Positions 44,746 through 54,503 of a stretch of DNA of 64,000 nt are shown here, piece after piece. The notes under the pieces are model-generated. The model saw only the letters and a program-made list of their open reading frames with translations. It was not told the DNA's origin and made no database searches. Each line of letters starts with the position of its first letter. The stretch's first letter is position 1. The stretch lies in sequence record MK250028.1; one strand, given 5' to 3'. The position numbers and the translations under genes are program-made.

Positions 44746-44780
44746 AGTTATATTATTTTTTAATTAAACATTCTATTAAT

Positions 44781-44792
44781 ACAAAGATACAT
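44781..44792 (-). promoter_or_regulatory. Bacteroidetes-type promoter TATCTTTG, copy 2
   Basis: ATGTATCTTTGT upstream of ATG 44745. Confidence 0.8.
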
Positions 44793-44814
44793 AAAATTAT
44801 TAAAAATAAAAAAT

Positions 44815-44852
44815 AGTAATTAAGAAAACTAATATTAAATTTCTTAATTACT
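44815..44852 (-). terminator. Putative terminator hairpin
   Basis: AGTAATTAAGAAA/TTTCTTAATTACT. Confidence 0.65.
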
Positions 44853-44863
44853 ATATATTTTAA

Positions 44864-45070
44864 TTACTTTGATGACGAGCTAGATGATGATGGAAATAAT
44901 AATTTAGCAACTGTCATCAAACACAATGCATGAATATATGTAATTGTTGGTAAACCAAATAAATATGGCATAACATAATTCCAACAAATCATAAATATAA
45001 TTGCACCTAAAATAATAAATATAATTGCAACTAAAATAGTTACAATTGATGTCCATATAAAAGTTTTCAT
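44864..45070 (-). CDS. Small two-TM membrane protein (68 aa)
   Basis: Long hydrophobic helix, LFGLPTITYIHAL, second helix, poly-Ser tail. Confidence 0.75.
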   Translation of the reverse strand: MKTFIWTSIVTILVAIIFIILGAIIFMICWNYVMPYLFGLPTITYIHALCLMTVAKLLFPSSSSSSSK

Positions 45071-45075
45071 ATAAT

Positions 45076-45177
45076 TTATTTACTTGTAATTAATGCAAAT
45101 AGAATATTTGATAATACATTAAATCTAAACTTCTTTTTTGCATATCTACCTTTATTTTTTATTTGTTCATACTTCAT
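45076..45177 (-). CDS. Possible 33-aa peptide MKYEQIKNKGRYAKKKFRFNVLSNILFALITSK
   Basis: Fills the operon gap and overlaps the upstream stop; below the track size cut-off. Confidence 0.35.
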   Translation of the reverse strand: MKYEQIKNKGRYAKKKFRFNVLSNILFALITSK

Positions 45178-45391
45178 TATTTCTATTATTATAATAATTA
45201 ATCAAATCAACTTTCATTTCTTTATTAAATTGATTATTTCTTTTTCTATTTCTAATAACTCTATCTTCTGCTATTTCACAATTATAACGTTTCCATTTAT
45301 TTAAAATAGAACGTCTATACTTTGGTTTAATTTTATCTTTATTATCATGCATATAATCATATACAGCTTGTTCTTTAAAATTATTACTCAT
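45167..45391 (-). CDS. Hypothetical basic protein (74 aa)
   Basis: Track ORF, ends TGA. Confidence 0.65.
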   Translation of the reverse strand: MSNNFKEQAVYDYMHDNKDKIKPKYRRSILNKWKRYNCEIAEDRVIRNRKRNNQFNKEMKVDLINYYNNRNNEV

Positions 45392-45433
45392 AGTATATTT
45401 TATAAAGATATTTTATTTTCAAAATAATAAAAA

Positions 45434-45499
45434 ATAAACATCAAAATTGTGGTTCTAAATCTTACTGCTACTTACTAAGACTACAATTTTGATGTTTAT
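45434..45499 (-). terminator. Long terminator hairpin closing candidate ncRNA-1
   Basis: ATAAACATCAAAATTGT/ACAATTTTGATGTTTAT 17-bp stem with a T run on the minus strand. Confidence 0.75.
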
Positions 45500-46243
45500 A
45501 AAAGCAATCATTCATTATCCTGCAGCATCCATATTAGTATAAGTTTCATTGCAATAGAACTTTACAACTATAGTGATAATCCACTTATACATTCTTTTAC
45601 TCTAAAGTCTTTTATATAACTTTATCATACATAATATATGTACTGTCCATCAATAAAAGGTTCTTTATTTCATCATGGTTTTATATCGTATAAACAACCC
45701 TCTGTATATCACTGATTCATTTCTTTACATTTAGAAATCAGAGTCTTTAAGCCTCAACGTTTGGCTGTAACTATTATCCTCAACCATTACCAGATAATGT
45801 CATCTTGTTTTTGTGGTGCATCTCACATACCTCCTTTAATCATAAAACAAGCAAAACTACTAAGACAAATAACGTTTCTTAGAACTTCTACGAATTTACG
45901 CTCATATCAAATCATCATCTGATATAGACACCTAAATTAAGTGAATAAAGTTTACGACTCAATATAAAATTTTATATCTCAACCTTTATCAAAAACGATT
46001 CATTAAATTCTTTTAAGGAACTTATTTCTAATTAAATGAAGGATTCATTTAAAATAGGTTCTCCCGAAAACATGCGGTTTATCCTTACTCATTATAATTA
46101 TAATAAGCGTTGTTTATAGCACTCATTAGAATTCATTATGTATTATCTAACTCTCATTTATAATATTCATAATTTATATGATATTAAAAGCAAAATGTCT
46201 AATATCATATTATAAATTATTTGTCTCGTTAGATATTATCAAA

Positions 46244-46257
46244 ATTTCAAAGAACTC
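46244..46257 (-). promoter_or_regulatory. boxA-like antitermination element GAGTTCTTTGAAAT
   Basis: Exact 14-nt match to 52387-52400; resembles rRNA-leader boxA (GTTCTTTGAAA type). Confidence 0.65.
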
Positions 46258-46280
46258 TTCATTGTTATTTTATTAACAAT

Positions 46281-46292
46281 ACAAAGATACAC
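46281..46292 (-). promoter_or_regulatory. Bacteroidetes-type promoter TATCTTTG, copy 3 (drives ncRNA-1 region)
   Basis: GTGTATCTTTGT; the nearest downstream CDS starts about 890 nt away. Confidence 0.8.
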
Positions 46293-46342
46293 ATTCTTTT
46301 TTAATAAAAAAAATATTCTAAGAAAAAATTAAAAATATTTTT

Positions 46343-47156: not shown

Positions 47157-48092
47157 TTACATTGTTCCATCATTAGGTTGCAAACACATAATTCCATGCT
47201 CTCGCCACATCTTAACCACTTTAGAAGAATCTTCCAATACAAACAATACATTATAATAAGGTTCAATATATTCCTTATATAAATTATATTTACAATCTGG
47301 ACCCTTTGTAAAATTCTTCAAAGGTCTCATTAACACCTTATCAACATTACCAATAAGGTTATTCTTCAACCAATCTTCTGTTGCATGTCTAATATCGTCT
47401 GTATCTTCTCTACCTGTCAATATAATAACATCCACTGATTTATCGGCAATATATGTATTAACAAGTTGGCAAAGTTGCTTACATGGTTTATCATCCCTCA
47501 TGCTATCAGCAGCACCATTACCATAAAATGGCCGACCTTGAAGATTAAAACAAAGTGTAGCATCCATATCTACAAGAATACAATTCTTCTTCGTTTCATC
47601 AAACTTCTTAAAGCTATTATATTGCTTATTATTAAGTTGTGTAGCAATAAAGTTTCTATATCGCCTATAAGTAGATTTGATAACGGATTCACCTATAGGA
47701 TTAGATCTAAATGAATCTCTTCTAATACATTCCTCTACCGATACATCAAAGAAATCCTTAAATTCCAATGTATAATGATACTCATTATGTGTCTCATTAT
47801 ACTTATCAATTCTATCTTGCATTTCTTTCCATCCCTTTGGATTCAGGTTCATATTATCCATAATGATATTCCAACCTTTTTTCATAGGTGATTTAAAAAA
47901 TGCATCTGTCATATCTTTAATAACAGAAAGTTTCTCACGTGATTCTACCCAATACTCACCGAACATGTTTCTAAGAGAATCCCAATTAATTCTAATTCTC
48001 TCAGTTGGTTTTTCCTTTACCCAATGTTCAGCGAATGTAGACTTACCAGACGCTTGAATACCTCTTGTCAATATAATTACCCTTTCTTTCAT
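47157..48092 (-). CDS. pseT: Polynucleotide 5'-kinase / 3'-phosphatase (T4 PseT-like)
   Basis: P-loop GIQASGKST, INWDSLRNM, VEECIRRD, HAD motif DMDAT, ILTGRE, LMRP, FVLED..VVKMWREHGIMCLQ. Confidence 0.92.
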   Translation of the reverse strand: MKERVIILTRGIQASGKSTFAEHWVKEKPTERIRINWDSLRNMFGEYWVESREKLSVIKDMTDAFFKSPMKKGWNIIMDNMNLNPKGWKEMQDRIDKYNETHNEYHYTLEFKDFFDVSVEECIRRDSFRSNPIGESVIKSTYRRYRNFIATQLNNKQYNSFKKFDETKKNCILVDMDATLCFNLQGRPFYGNGAADSMRDDKPCKQLCQLVNTYIADKSVDVIILTGREDTDDIRHATEDWLKNNLIGNVDKVLMRPLKNFTKGPDCKYNLYKEYIEPYYNVLFVLEDSSKVVKMWREHGIMCLQPNDGTM

Positions 48093-49954: not shown

Positions 49955-50352
49955 TAGAATAACGGATTAATTTTTATCTCGTTTGTTTTACTATATTCTT
50001 GTACATCTAAATTCAATGTTTCATTTAGCCAATCAGCAATTAAATGTCTGTGACAAAATTCATCTGGTTTTTCAAAACAACATAAAGCACAATCTTTATT
50101 ACCTGTTATAAACTTTAATCTATCTATAAATAAAGTTGGTTCTTTAAATATAGATAAAACTTCAGCTTTATATCGTTTTCTAAACTCTTGATGATTGCTT
50201 CTACAATTATTCAATATATCTGGTGTAGGTGCGATACTTGCTAAGTTAACCCCTTTGAAATCATTTGGCGGATAACAACACACACCTATAGGAATAATAT
50301 TATTCTTTATAAGATTATTAATATTACCAAAATAGCTTGTATATATTTTCAT
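49954..50352 (-). CDS. DUF488-family protein
   Basis: MKIYTSYFG start, LASIAPT, ALCCFEKPDEFCHRHLIADWL. Confidence 0.85.
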   Translation of the reverse strand: MKIYTSYFGNINNLIKNNIIPIGVCCYPPNDFKGVNLASIAPTPDILNNCRSNHQEFRKRYKAEVLSIFKEPTLFIDRLKFITGNKDCALCCFEKPDEFCHRHLIADWLNETLNLDVQEYSKTNEIKINPLF

Positions 50353-50561
50353 ACACGAAATAAACTATATATTTCATTATAAGTTTCTTTTGATATTGGA
50401 TATGATACTATATTACAATATTCTCCGAAATTCTGATCAACATCTACCATATAACCTTGTTTATATGTATCATAATAGCATCTTACTATATGTGAAACAT
50501 TAACTAAACCTGAAGATGTATCAATAAATTTATTATAATTTTTATTTTTTAACTTAATCAT
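50349..50561 (-). CDS. Hypothetical protein (70 aa)
   Basis: Likely start ATG 50561 (MIKLKNK); the longer track start overlaps the divergent gene. Confidence 0.65.
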   Translation of the reverse strand: MIKLKNKNYNKFIDTSSGLVNVSHIVRCYYDTYKQGYMVDVDQNFGEYCNIVSYPISKETYNEIYSLFRV

Positions 50562-50620
50562 AATACTAAAACTATATAACTTAATGTTTATATAATATAT
50601 AAATGTTTTTGTTTTATTTA

Positions 50621-50944
50621 ATGGGAGGTTTTGTTTATTTAATTTGCGATCCTGAATAGAATTGTTATAAAATAGGTGTAACAAGGAATATAGCATAGAA
50701 TAGATTAAAGTAGTTATAGACTGGTAACTCATCAAAATTACATATGGTTTCAAATATATATTGTGAATATCCTTTTAGACTTGAAACAATGTTACATAAT
50801 AAATTCAATCATAAACGTGCAAATGGTGAATGGTTCTATTTAGAATAGGAAGATATAAGTAATTTTAAAACTATATGTGAAGAAACAATATAGATGATTA
50901 ATGTAATGAAAGATAATCCATTCTTTAGTAAAGATTTAAAATGA
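50621..50944 (+). CDS. T5orf172 / GIY-YIG-superfamily nuclease-like protein (107 aa)
   Basis: Absent from the track; GFVYLI..YKIGVT..RLKQLQTGN..LE..LH..F..KR..GEWF; six TAG and no CAA/CAG. Confidence 0.88.
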
Positions 50945-50990
50945 ATAAAGGTGATATAAGAATAATAAAACTTATATCGCCTTTATTTTT
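50944..50990. terminator. Bidirectional terminator
   Basis: AATAAAGGTGATATAAG/CTTATATCGCCTTTATT stem. Confidence 0.85.
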
Positions 50991-51264
50991 AATTATCTTT
51001 CTTTTCTAATTCCTTATTAATATAATCCATATCTTCATCTGTTAAATCGCCAAATAATGTGAATAAATCTTTATTAATAAGTCCATATCTCATAAGATAT
51101 GCTAATGTCATTCTTACAGCATAATCTGCAATATCATAAGTTGTTGTAACTTCTAAATTTTGTAAATCTGGATTATTACCAACTACATTAGAAACTTTAT
51201 CAACAATCTTATCACATGTTTTTTTCATTGAATTTAATTCATTATTTGTTAATTTGGTACTCAT
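50989..51264 (-). CDS. Hypothetical protein (91 aa)
   Basis: Likely start ATG 51264 (MSTKLTNNE); the longer track start runs into the terminator. Confidence 0.7.
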   Translation of the reverse strand: MSTKLTNNELNSMKKTCDKIVDKVSNVVGNNPDLQNLEVTTTYDIADYAVRMTLAYLMRYGLINKDLFTLFGDLTDEDMDYINKELEKKDN

Positions 51265-51329
51265 AATATCATTAAATAATTTAATTATTATATTACAACG
51301 ATATGCATAAAGTTTAGAAATAAAAAATG

Positions 51330-51361
51330 AGTTATTAGACTTATGCACAATCTAATAACTC
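51330..51361 (-). terminator. Intrinsic terminator closing candidate ncRNA-2
   Basis: GAGTTATTAGA/TCTAATAACTC stem followed by ATTTTTT on the minus strand. Confidence 0.8.
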
Positions 51362-52386
51362 ACAAACACTTTATTCTAAATTTATTATATTTACATCTTA
51401 TTTAAAGATGTCCCTCATGTTGTTATTTGTACGAACATAAGTTTCTGCCTCTTATGATTCACTTTAACGTTTGCCCGTTATATAATGAATGTTCATACTG
51501 AACTTCGTTATGTCCATAAGGACAAATGGCTGAGAACTTGACCAACACCGACTCTCAATGCTGTAACGTTGGAGTTACATGTTCACACAACTCTTATTTC
51601 TAAGAGGTTGAGAGCATACCCACGACTTTTGTAAAAAATCGTAAACTCTTACTTGATAGGTTTCATAGAAATTCATTTCATACCAACTTCCTTGGAAGGA
51701 TTCAATGTGTCCCCACATTTAGCACGATACTACTCTTACTATTCTCATGTCTTTCCTTGCGGTACTCGAATCATGTCTACATATTACAGTAGAATAAGGG
51801 TATTTTAACCACCAAGTGTCGCACACTTTTGCTTATACATAATTATATGTTAAATAAAATAATTTCCAATATTATTATTCTTATTATATATTCTTTAGAC
51901 TTGAAAGACGAGGTGCGACCAATAGCATTTCTTCCTTTTGAGAAGAACCCACTAAATCGCCTTTCTGAAATTTCGTTACACCAATGTAACCATATTTCTA
52001 CTCTTATAACTTACCTATTGTTTTTCAATAGTAATCTTACCATTTCTGAAACAAGTTACCAGCTTGTATAAATTATTTGGTTTATAATTTATATAAGATT
52101 CATTATAACAATTAATATTAGCACTGGGAATTGGTATTCCGATCACTAAATATCCATAAACTTAAACTCCTATTGTATTACTACTCACATCAGTTGTCTA
52201 TCAAACTTCCAATGTATATAAACTTCATCTCAGGAATTATCCCATCAATTTCCCATTTATACAAGCACTTACTAAGTTTGGTTTTCTGTAGAATGCTCAT
52301 TATTCATAAACATCGATAAACATGTCTACTGTTTACCTTTATCACATCACTGCTTTATCCTTACCCCACCGAAACCATGGGTTTAT

Positions 52387-52400
52387 ATTTCAAAGAACTC
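52387..52400 (-). promoter_or_regulatory. boxA-like antitermination element GAGTTCTTTGAAAT
   Basis: Exact copy of 46244-46257, about 30 nt downstream of the predicted start site. Confidence 0.65.
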
Positions 52401-52437
52401 ATCTTGAATAAAATAAATTCATTCAAATTTTATACTT

Positions 52438-52466
52438 ATTATATAATCAATAATTTAAAAAGTCTA
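52438..52466 (-). promoter_or_regulatory. Sigma70-like promoter TAGACT-N17-TATAAT (P2 of ncRNA-2)
   Basis: -35 at 52461-52466, -10 at 52438-52443. Confidence 0.7.
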
Positions 52467-52553
52467 TATTTTAATAGATATATTTCAAAATTTTTATTGT
52501 TAACTGTTATTAAAAATATTAAATATTAAAATCTTTTTAAACTTGATTCTAAA

Positions 52554-52582
52554 TTTATATATTAAATTAAATAGAAAGTCTA
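52554..52582 (-). promoter_or_regulatory. Sigma70-like promoter TAGACT-N17-TATAAA (P1 of ncRNA-2)
   Basis: -35 at 52577-52582, -10 at 52554-52559. Confidence 0.6.
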
Positions 52583-52608
52583 TATTTCAATACAATATTT
52601 TTAAAAAA

Positions 52609-52785
52609 TTATTTTAAACAATATTCTAAATCAAATATAAAGTCGCCTAATAGTTCAATCTTTTTCCTAATAAGTTCTGATTCTAAATCAAATTTATGAT
52701 CTATACAAAAATTTAATTCAATATATAACTTATCTCTATTAGATTTCCATTTATCTATTAATTCTTTCTTTGTTAATTTTTCCAT
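52609..52785 (-). CDS. Hypothetical protein (58 aa)
   Basis: MEKLTKKELIDKWKS...FDLEYCLK; starts 1 nt after the upstream stop. Confidence 0.65.
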   Translation of the reverse strand: MEKLTKKELIDKWKSNRDKLYIELNFCIDHKFDLESELIRKKIELLGDFIFDLEYCLK

Positions 52786-52786
52786 C

Positions 52787-53287
52787 TTAAAAATTCATTA
52801 TATTTACACCAGCAATAGAAAGAAATTTTATATTCTTAATAATTTCACATGCTTTATCTTCTGGAAATATAATTTTAAAATCATCATAAACATCCATCAC
52901 TTCTTGCCATTTACATTCATCTCTTGGTGCTTCCATAGAAGTATATATTTTAGCAATAAGCATTCTTTTTTTAAATTGATTATAAAACGTACTTCTTGGA
53001 TACATCCCATGTTCATATCCTCCATTTGGATGATGTCCCATCCAATCAGGTTCAATATAATGACTCCATTTTACTCCTTCAAAATATAAAGTCTTATCTG
53101 GTTTTACACTAATAGAAATACTTTTATTTTTATCTTTTTGATATTCTATAAATTCAAGAAAATTATTTAATGCATCAAGATATTTCTCTGCATATTCTGC
53201 TTCTTCTTTTTTATCAAAAATATAACTAAAACCAAAAGTATTATCTACAACTTCATATTTTACTTTTGTCTCAATCTTATTAATCAT
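52787..53287 (-). CDS. Hypothetical protein (~166 aa)
   Basis: Track ORF; likely start at 53287 or 53311. Confidence 0.75.
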   Translation of the reverse strand: MINKIETKVKYEVVDNTFGFSYIFDKKEEAEYAEKYLDALNNFLEFIEYQKDKNKSISISVKPDKTLYFEGVKWSHYIEPDWMGHHPNGGYEHGMYPRSTFYNQFKKRMLIAKIYTSMEAPRDECKWQEVMDVYDDFKIIFPEDKACEIIKNIKFLSIAGVNIMNF

Positions 53288-53303
53288 ATTATTATTTTTA
53301 TAA

Positions 53304-53778: not shown

Positions 53779-53802
53779 TTTTCTATATTATTTAAAATAA
53801 AA

Positions 53803-54009
53803 TTAAACTTTTAAATTAACTAAATCTTTATACTTTATTTCTTTATACTTTGTTTTATTAATAGATATAAAAATAGGCTTATCAGTATAACTTTTATAAT
53901 AATTTAACGATTCGTCTTTACTAATAAACCACTTTGTTTCTTTATCTAAAATTTTTCCAGATAAACTTCTTCCTAATCCTATCCGAATAATAATATTATT
54001 TTTCAACAT
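53803..54009 (-). CDS. Hypothetical protein (68 aa)
   Basis: Track ORF, ends TAA. Confidence 0.55.
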   Translation of the reverse strand: MLKNNIIIRIGLGRSLSGKILDKETKWFISKDESLNYYKSYTDKPIFISINKTKYKEIKYKDLVNLKV

Positions 54010-54051
54010 AATTAAAAATAATTTTTCAAAAAGAAATTTATAAATTAATTA

Positions 54052-54485
54052 NNNNNNNNNNNNNNNNNNNNNNNNNNNNNNNNNNNNNNNNNNNNNNNNN
54101 NNNNNNNNNNNNNNNNNNNNNNNNNNNNNNNNNNNNNNNNNNNNNNNNNNNNNNNNNNNNNNNNNNNNNNNNNNNNNNNNNNNNNNNNNNNNNNNNNNNN
54201 NNNNNNNNNNNNNNNNNNNNNNNNNNNNNNNNNNNNNNNNNNNNNNNNNNNNNNNNNNNNNNNNNNNNNNNNNNNNNNNNNNNNNNNNNNNNNNNNNNNN
54301 NNNNNNNNNNNNNNNNNNNNNNNNNNNNNNNNNNNNNNNNNNNNNNNNNNNNNNNNNNNNNNNNNNNNNNNNNNNNNNNNNNNNNNNNNNNNNNNNNNNN
54401 NNNNNNNNNNNNNNNNNNNNNNNNNNNNNNNNNNNNNNNNNNNNNNNNNNNNNNNNNNNNNNNNNNNNNNNNNNNNNNNNNNNNN
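54052..54485. other. Assembly gap (434 N)
   Basis: Run of N. Confidence 1.
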
Positions 54486-54503
54486 TTTATAATTTGTTGT
54501 AAA

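Follow-up and report, generated by a model that had tools for sequence, protein, structure and literature searches.

A probable divergent GOLLD RNA in a Prevotella Lak-B megaphage and its relatives from the gut and rumen

What kind of RNA, if any, is encoded at positions 51330-51835 of the window, the 64-kb stretch of DNA analysed here? The first-pass annotation had described the minus strand of this segment as a highly structured domain of about 500 nt, making up the 3' half of a larger ncRNA. Here we report that the segment very probably comprises the conserved 3' domain, a Lak-specific tail and the terminator of a divergent GOLLD RNA carried by a Lak-B megaphage. GOLLD was reportedly introduced by Weinberg et al. 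in 2009. Judged by its sequence and predicted structure, the RNA described here appears to be a member of this known family on a carrier of a new kind, and a literature search returned no paper linking GOLLD to Lak, megaphage or huge phage. All features of the RNA given below are on the minus strand.

Lak phages rank among the largest phages of human and animal guts. The 1.13 kb around the RNA show 100% identity to Prevotella phage Lak-B5 (MK250024) as well as to Lak-B9, and 88-90% to Lak-A and Lak-C; on this identity the window is assigned to a Prevotella Lak-B megaphage, and no match to the window was found in the plasmid collection searched. With TAG taken as a sense codon, ORFs of at least 80 aa cover 90% of the window, up from 61%, which is consistent with the alternative code of the Lak phages. 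ORF-free gaps are left under this code at 44746-46342 and 51349-52786, and a third one at 53779-54503 overlaps a masked stretch; there, at ~54001-54500, the composition profile shows near-zero GC, and the DNA appears to be a masked or N region. The RNA sits in the second gap, given as 1.26 kb without ORFs, on whose minus strand no ORF of at least 60 aa was detected with table 11 or with TAG=Q. A plus-strand ORF of 104 aa (51757-52071) was rejected as an artefact of TAG read-through. Between the two RNA candidates of the window lies a gene for a 311-aa polynucleotide kinase (47157-48092, minus strand; phrog_505, E 1.4e-58), an enzyme of the RNA-repair type with weaker similarity to an RNA ligase family.

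The extent of the RNA was delimited by folding, by comparison of Lak genomes and by RNA-seq contigs. The minus strand of 51330-51860 folds at -133.9 kcal/mol compared with -109.1 +/- 6.1 for dinucleotide shuffles (z = -4.04), and none of the 100 shuffles folds as well. Alignment of Lak-B5, B2, C1, A2 and A1 revealed a sharply bounded conserved block at ~51426-52402, outside of which the flanks diverge and become unalignable among these phages. The 5' ~500 nt of the block contain many compensatory substitutions in hairpins, an AT-rich spacer of ~65 nt is variable among the Lak types, and the 3' ~400 nt are nearly invariant, with 98-100% identity among Lak-A/B/C, compared with only 76-79% among Lak types in the neighbouring non-coding gap. 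Four RNA-seq runs from four studies (two of the gut, one of the pig gut and one of wastewater) each yielded one contig of 926-1020 nt that matches the block at ~51443-52413, as exemplified by a 971-nt contig on 51443-52413. In three runs the contig begins at 52413-52430 and in one at ~52483; the contigs leave just 8-27 letters unmatched at their ends, and in all four cases run through the AT-rich spacer; the flanks 50300-51440 and 52480-53300 gave no RNA-seq contig save one 35-nt piece of low depth. True RNA ends, strand, abundance and timing are not readable from these Logan contigs. Since the contigs stop at the block borders, as DNA carry-over would not, they are best read as a single discrete RNA of ~970-985 nt, transcribed from ~52430-52413 to ~51443, and their course points to an RNA that spans both "halves" together with the AT-rich linker. 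The segment 51330-51835 corresponds to the 3' domain plus ~110 nt past the 3' end of the contigs, terminator included. Both parts of the first-pass description are borne out by these data: the domain is highly structured by its folding energy, its conservation in Lak phages and the covariation described below, and the proposed 3' half corresponds to the conserved 3' domain of a single RNA of ~970 nt.

Relatives of the RNA were found by searches of decreasing stringency. An exact 22-mer search returned close Lak relatives only; the 17-mer GAGTACCGCAAGGAAAG, followed by the two-anchor pattern AAGCAARAGT...GAGTAYYGNRARRAAAG, recovered seven diverged homologues from IMG/VR, whose contigs measure 23-386 kb, and the same motif scans added ~30 further homologues in metagenome contigs and one in a rumen MAG. 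After L099 and L128/L135 were dropped as chance hits, 33 distinct non-Lak sequences with ~50% identity to the Lak copy were kept, and Lak and non-Lak sequences were combined in alignments A2/A3, which comprise 36 sequences. The IMG/VR homologues lie on viral contigs and the others on metagenome contigs, and most of the tested loci are located within tRNA arrays. As a separate observation, several low-GC IMG/VR contigs (L010, L018, L020-L022, L025, L026, L032 and L033) contain a recurrent conserved element that in most copies includes GACGGGAGTACCGYAAGGGAAAGCAAGA, with ACCGGGAAACAGGATAAG after it in the majority; it surfaced through the pattern GAGTACCGYRAGGRAAAG, which fails to match the Lak motif, and the loci are unrelated.

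The family assignment rests on covariance-model scans. When the Rfam gathering cut-off was lifted, ten out of ten homologue loci matched GOLLD (RF02032) over its full length (model 1-416), with scores of 66-102 bits (best 101.6) and E-values of 2e-15 to 5e-26, and L071, which lies in a complete 106.6-kb record, matched at 85.4 bits. In a narrow cmscan, the stretch 51965-51605 of the window itself reached 62.4 bits (E 7.7e-16; model 1-416), so that the comparison by Infernal with Rfam proposed in the first-pass annotation led to a known family. The order of elements is that of the model: a long hairpin (51965-51903) whose loop is UCAAAAG, a linker (51902-51835) that is AU-rich and unpaired, AAAGCAAAAGU and the pseudoknot, and then CGCAA-type hairpins, GAGUA and a terminal UCUCAG loop; the final third of the cmscan alignment of the window is misplaced, the true terminal hairpin being at 51544-51527. 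The match becomes visible once 600 nt (51400-52000) are scanned and is invisible to cmscan at 64 kb or 2 kb. Nothing relevant was reported by Rfam at gathering level for the whole 64-kb window or at E up to 10 for the 2-kb stretch 50900-52900, and whole-record searches of three Lak genomes missed the match. AT-rich divergent GOLLD members are lost to the speed filters of cmscan, and these blanks are therefore no evidence of absence. The gathering score of 150 bits, which is a database cut-off and not a biological trait, was reached by no member of the gut/rumen clade examined; since all scores fall below it, Rfam-based pipelines would leave the clade unannotated.

These low scores could also fit a new RNA family that has modules such as GNRA hairpins and a loop-E motif in common with GOLLD by convergence. 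In addition, most other 5' regions show no relationship to these, and GOLLD takes its name from Lactobacillales, Actinomycetales and lake sources, unlike the hosts and phages seen here. However, such a family is hardly expected to match model 1-416 at all ten loci, with E-values down to 5e-26, in the same element order and with the trait of a tRNA in the linker in common, and we consider convergence highly improbable.

Other families were searched for with blank results. For ROOL, the window gave no match with E up to 10, nor did the ten homologue loci at E up to 5, and neither HEARO nor introns nor other families matched at E up to 10 in the scanned stretches of the window. ARAGORN reported no tRNA and no tmRNA in the 64-kb window, and with Rfam equally devoid of such matches, the earlier statement that the RNA is not a tRNA, tmRNA, RNase P RNA or intron stands. 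Readings as RNase P or a group I intron, prompted by the tRNA context, were rejected for lack of a model match and of signature motifs, and a reading as an rRNA fragment or mimic, prompted by the AGUACCGCAAGG(G)AAAG module with its likeness to a 23S motif, was rejected since neither an rRNA model match nor collinearity was seen. A self-splicing intron, the end of a mobile element or a gene hidden by further recoding might be considered, given that Lak phages recode TAG and that introns are frequent in phages. Yet no group I or group II model matches, and the flanks are intergenic, with the element's own terminator and no interrupted gene; no ORF appears under TAG=Q, and the substitutions are pairwise compensatory and not codon-like; and each Lak record contains a single full-length match to the RNA region (15 places in 15 records). 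We regard all three as exceedingly improbable.

The structure of the proposed GOLLD 3' domain was judged for covariation by RNAalifold and by pair counts on the 36-sequence alignment. RNAalifold predicted 48 pairs, 40 of them with compensatory changes, and two of the checks named in the first-pass annotation, folding energy better than that of shuffles and covariation, both came out in favour of a structured RNA. The conserved core (51522-51834; RF02032, A2/A3) extends from AAGCAAAAGU to the terminal hairpin UGG-UCAAGUUCUCAG-CCA. Its strongest element is a long-range helix between the 5' strand ACUUGGUGG (51808-51817) and the 3' strand CCUAUCAAGU (51651-51660), in which 51817-51809 pairs with 51659-51651 (columns 19-28 / 194-203) and up to seven pair types per position are found; this helix is the pseudoknot of the Rfam GOLLD model. 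A second long-range helix joins AUACCC (51798-51803) with GGGUAU (51621-51616) and is paired in 208 of 212 cells (98%), a value that none of 500 shuffles reaches and that compares with 41-67 for slid controls. As the second helix crosses the first, the core is a pseudoknot. Two hairpins with covarying stems occupy 51746-51793, namely UCUAC-UGUAAUAU-GUAGA and CAUG...AGUA-CC-GCAA-GG-AAAG...CAUG, the latter presenting a GNRA loop that sits on a module of loop-E type. Across the homologues the GAGUACCGCAAGGAAAG module hardly varies (GCGA in one), most of it having been required by the retrieval pattern itself. A three-way junction follows at 51551-51615, with the outer stem GCUCUC/GAGAGU and two hairpins (one with a GAAA loop, one formed by UGUAAC/GUUACA), and its columns 245-250 / 324-329 and 251-258 / 263-270 all covary. 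A possible tertiary contact of GUG (columns 272-274) with the terminal loop was set aside, as it covaries in homologues and is not formed in the Lak sequence.

Several pairings that the first-pass annotation had listed for this domain coincide with the covarying structure. The stems TCTAC/GTAGA (51793-51789 / 51780-51776) and CATG/CATG around the AGUA...GCAA...AAAG module (51775-51746) covary over the 36 sequences, covariation also upholds CTCTCAA/TTGAGAG (51615-51610 / 51556-51551) with its two inner hairpins, and ACGATTTT/AAAAGTCGT has a homologous hairpin among the homologues, with a one-column alignment offset. Two pairings find no support. AAGTG/CACTT never varies, and its 3' arm belongs to the covarying helix 51817-51809 / 51659-51651, with its supposed loop GUGCGAC pairing instead with 51919-51913; TATTCT/AGAATA is paired in just 54% of non-Lak cells and overlaps the covarying TCTAC stem.

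Upstream of the core, conservation among Lak-A/B/C and the RNA-seq contigs define the variable domain of the RNA, a 5' region of ~510 nt (51903-52413). In five Lak sequences it has 145 predicted pairs, 36 of them compensatory, and the only non-Lak homologue with a detectably similar 5' region is L071 (nhmmer E 2.7e-7). The last hairpin of this region (51903-51965) aligns by cmscan with positions 1-59 of the Rfam GOLLD model and has the internal loop GUCGCAC (51919-51913). It is followed by the AU-rich variable linker (51835-51902), which aligns to the unpaired linker of the GOLLD model and is poorly conserved among Lak types. The Lak linker holds no tRNA; in two rumen homologues this position is taken by a tRNA gene, at 328-402 inside the GOLLD match 247-706 in L123 and at 672-745 inside the GOLLD match 376-827 in L094.

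Directly after AAGCAAAAGU lies a variable 7-mer, GUGCGAC (51824-51818), whose perfect complement is the GUCGCAC of the last 5' hairpin. The pairing across the linker is present in 31 of 33 family members at 7/7 (8/8 in one), purely by Watson-Crick pairs in 24, and involves at least 12 different 7-mer pairs, the partner always being 57-123 nt upstream. It may be a loop-loop or trans-linker contact and may be intermolecular. In the cryo-EM structure of GOLLD, L20-J13/15 is a covarying, intermolecular bridge designated B7 (10.1101/2024.12.08.627333). The pairing 51919-51913 / 51824-51818 is probably this contact, as judged by position alone.

The same pairing bears on whether the locus might instead encode two independent RNAs, the 3' half being transcribed from TTGGAA-N16-TATAAT in the AT-rich spacer. 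This internal promoter, suggested in the first-pass annotation, matches the consensus at 10 of 12 positions (51869-51842), and the homologue L074 has a tRNA with encoded CCA that ends 4 nt ahead of AAGCAAAAGU, from which tRNA processing could free a 3' domain. However, promoter-like hits are as frequent in shuffles (17 vs 16.8), the proposed promoter falls in the GOLLD linker, which all RNA-seq contigs pass straight through and which aligns to that of the model, and the covarying 7-nt pairing joins both sides of the spacer. The internal promoter is accordingly not retained, and we find two separate transcripts very improbable.

At the other end of the single proposed RNA, a Lak-specific 3' tail (51426-51521) with predicted hairpins GUCC/GGAC, GUUCA/UGAAC, AUUCAUU/AGUGAAU and CAUAAG/CUUAUG is kept in Lak-A/B/C, absent from the non-Lak homologues and covered by RNA-seq down to 51443. 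Three hairpins of the first-pass annotation, GTCC/GGAC, CTTATGTT/AACATGAG and ACATCTT/AAGATGT, are predicted in Lak only. The RNA-seq contigs, with their 3' end at 51443, stop short of the latter two; CTTATGTT/AACATGAG straddles the border of the Lak-A/B/C conserved block (~51426), and ACATCTT/AAGATGT is outside it. The terminator noted earlier is recovered as an intrinsic-terminator-like hairpin with a U-run (51327-51363) ahead of the next gene, two such terminators being found where 0.1 would be expected, and Lak-A/C have an equivalent hairpin of different sequence. Upstream of the RNA, a putative promoter-like sequence, TAGACT-N17-TATAAT (52438-52466), has 10/12 consensus matches and is conserved from Lak-B to Lak-C1/A2 and not in Lak-A1. 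The RNA lies on the same strand as, and directly upstream of, a small gene (50989-51264, minus strand), an arrangement that would suit a long structured leader or attenuator controlling this gene. But the terminator stands between the two, the RNA-seq contigs end at 51443, short of the gene, the downstream flank is not conserved together with the RNA, and the homologues are found in tRNA arrays and not before this gene; regulation of this kind is extremely improbable.

The 5' end of the conserved block contains GAGTTCTTTGAAAT (52387-52400), a motif resembling boxA of rrn leaders. The same 14-mer opens ncRNA-1 (46257-46244), the second RNA candidate of the window, and with one mismatch allowed it has four sites in Lak-B2, one in the GOLLD RNA, one in ncRNA-1 and two in leaders of the tRNA island (L039 1427-1440 and 1539-1552), compared with none for a reversed control pattern. 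As a family the motif reads (G/A/T)AGTTCTTTGAAAT and is placed at the start of each of these four units; in the tRNA-island copies and ncRNA-1, it lies 20-30 nt past a TATCTTTG promoter box. In one Bacilli genome GTTCTTTGAAAA was found 60-90 nt ahead of the 16S start in 16 of 16 matches, and a second genome has it too, the position being that of the rrn-leader boxA; a literature search for a published boxA consensus returned nothing usable. From the boxA-like leader motif a recruitment of Nus factors may be inferred, and these sequence features suggest that the stable-RNA units of Lak may use Nus-factor antitermination, the boxA used for comparison being that of Bacilli.

The candidate ncRNA-1 itself, ~800 nt in length, is located at 45440-46260 (minus strand) inside the ORF-free gap 44746-46342 and has its own TATCTTTG promoter box, GAGTTCTTTGAAAT leader motif and terminator. 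Compared with Lak-A/C, its conservation is mosaic (76-79% overall), with 15 compensatory pairs, and two studies have RNA-seq runs in which small shares of its words occur. Rfam gave no match to it, and its reading as a paralogue of either half of the GOLLD RNA was rejected, local alignment being no better than with shuffles. Next to it, at 46261-46300, lies a ~40-nt promoter-like repeat with TGTATCTTTG that has ~30 sites in Lak-B2; TGTATCTTTG matches the Bacteroidota -7 box TAnnTTTG.

Known GOLLD RNAs are made up of a 3' region that is conserved universally, a divergent 5' region and a variable linker in which tRNAs sometimes occur; they are phage-encoded, their expression climbs at lysis, and ribosomes are pulled down with them (10.1101/2024.12.08.627333). 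By cryo-EM, GOLLD env-38 is a D7 14-mer cage with 5' caps, 3' rings and inward linkers (10.1101/2024.12.08.627333). If the Lak RNA follows its homologue env-38, many copies would assemble without protein into a closed cage, with the 3' domains forming rings, the 5' domains forming caps and the linker facing the interior. The boxA-like element, as its motif implies, would recruit host Nus factors and let the long untranslated transcript escape premature termination. Our best guess at the function is a lytic-phase cage or scaffold that may act on the translation apparatus, on either tRNAs or ribosomes. By homology, the Lak RNA would oligomerise like env-38, in a stoichiometry that may differ given its different 5' region and its extra 3' tail. 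A bolder proposal, which we put forward as speculation and consider unlikely, would unite the Lak RNA and its relatives in a GOLLD subclass of their own among phages of the gut and rumen, at least one lineage of them (Lak) infecting Bacteroidota. Equipped with a separate 5' cap domain, an extra 3' tail and a leader of boxA type, the ~1-kb Lak version would in this view form a cage of another size or stoichiometry; it might involve ncRNA-1 and might serve the take-over of translation by a TAG-recoding megaphage.

To our knowledge, GOLLD is among very few natural RNAs that build protein-free cages. The predicted Lak member would extend its range to phages predicted to infect Bacteroidota, in the form of a divergent, highly conserved copy that small RNA-seq libraries yield as a discrete contig and that belongs to a clade missed by curated thresholds and default search filters. 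With ~36 sequences at 50% identity, this clade is useful to test the conservation of tertiary and quaternary contacts, and the Lak GOLLD is more useful as comparative material for cage-forming RNAs and their role. The uncoupling of the Lak copy from tRNA genes bears on the idea that ties GOLLD function to tRNA islands: in Lak-B2, whose 31 tRNAs are located mainly at 125-139 kb and 424-427 kb, the RNA (487.7-488.8 kb) has its nearest tRNA at ~61 kb. Its boxA-like leader suggests how long untranslated RNAs could be fully transcribed.

Three known systems invite comparison with the Lak RNA. With rrn leaders, which carry boxA and undergo NusB/NusE antitermination, it shares GTTCTTTGAAA at its 5' end, identical to the pre-16S element of Bacilli, in a transcript that is likewise long, structured and untranslated; unlike them, it keeps the element in the RNA-seq contigs and does not have it trimmed, and the comparison was made with Bacilli. 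ROOL, said to have been described by Weinberg et al. in 2017, is a large ornate phage RNA that often lies near tRNA genes and forms an RNA-only cage, an octamer, a likeness to the Lak RNA that holds by analogy, whereas the covariance model of ROOL has no match in it at E up to 10. From other GOLLD RNAs the Lak RNA differs in its score of 62 bits against a gathering score of 150, with the whole gut/rumen clade below this cut-off; in its carrier, a TAG-sense megaphage of 540-550 kb with Prevotella as its predicted host; in its distance of >60 kb from any tRNA gene, where tRNA neighbours are typical of GOLLD and not obligatory; in its length of ~970-985 nt, which includes an additional ~80-100 nt of conserved 3' tail and, in the leader, a motif resembling boxA; in a 5' region common to just one other homologue; and in several of the GNRA hairpin loops of its relatives. 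With GOLLD it nevertheless has in common a significant full-length match to the covariance model, a phage genome as carrier, a length of >800 nt, a 3' region that is conserved and pseudoknotted, a 5' region that varies, a variable AU-rich linker, which in some non-Lak relatives contains a tRNA, and a covarying pairing that joins the final 5'-region hairpin to the beginning of the 3' region.
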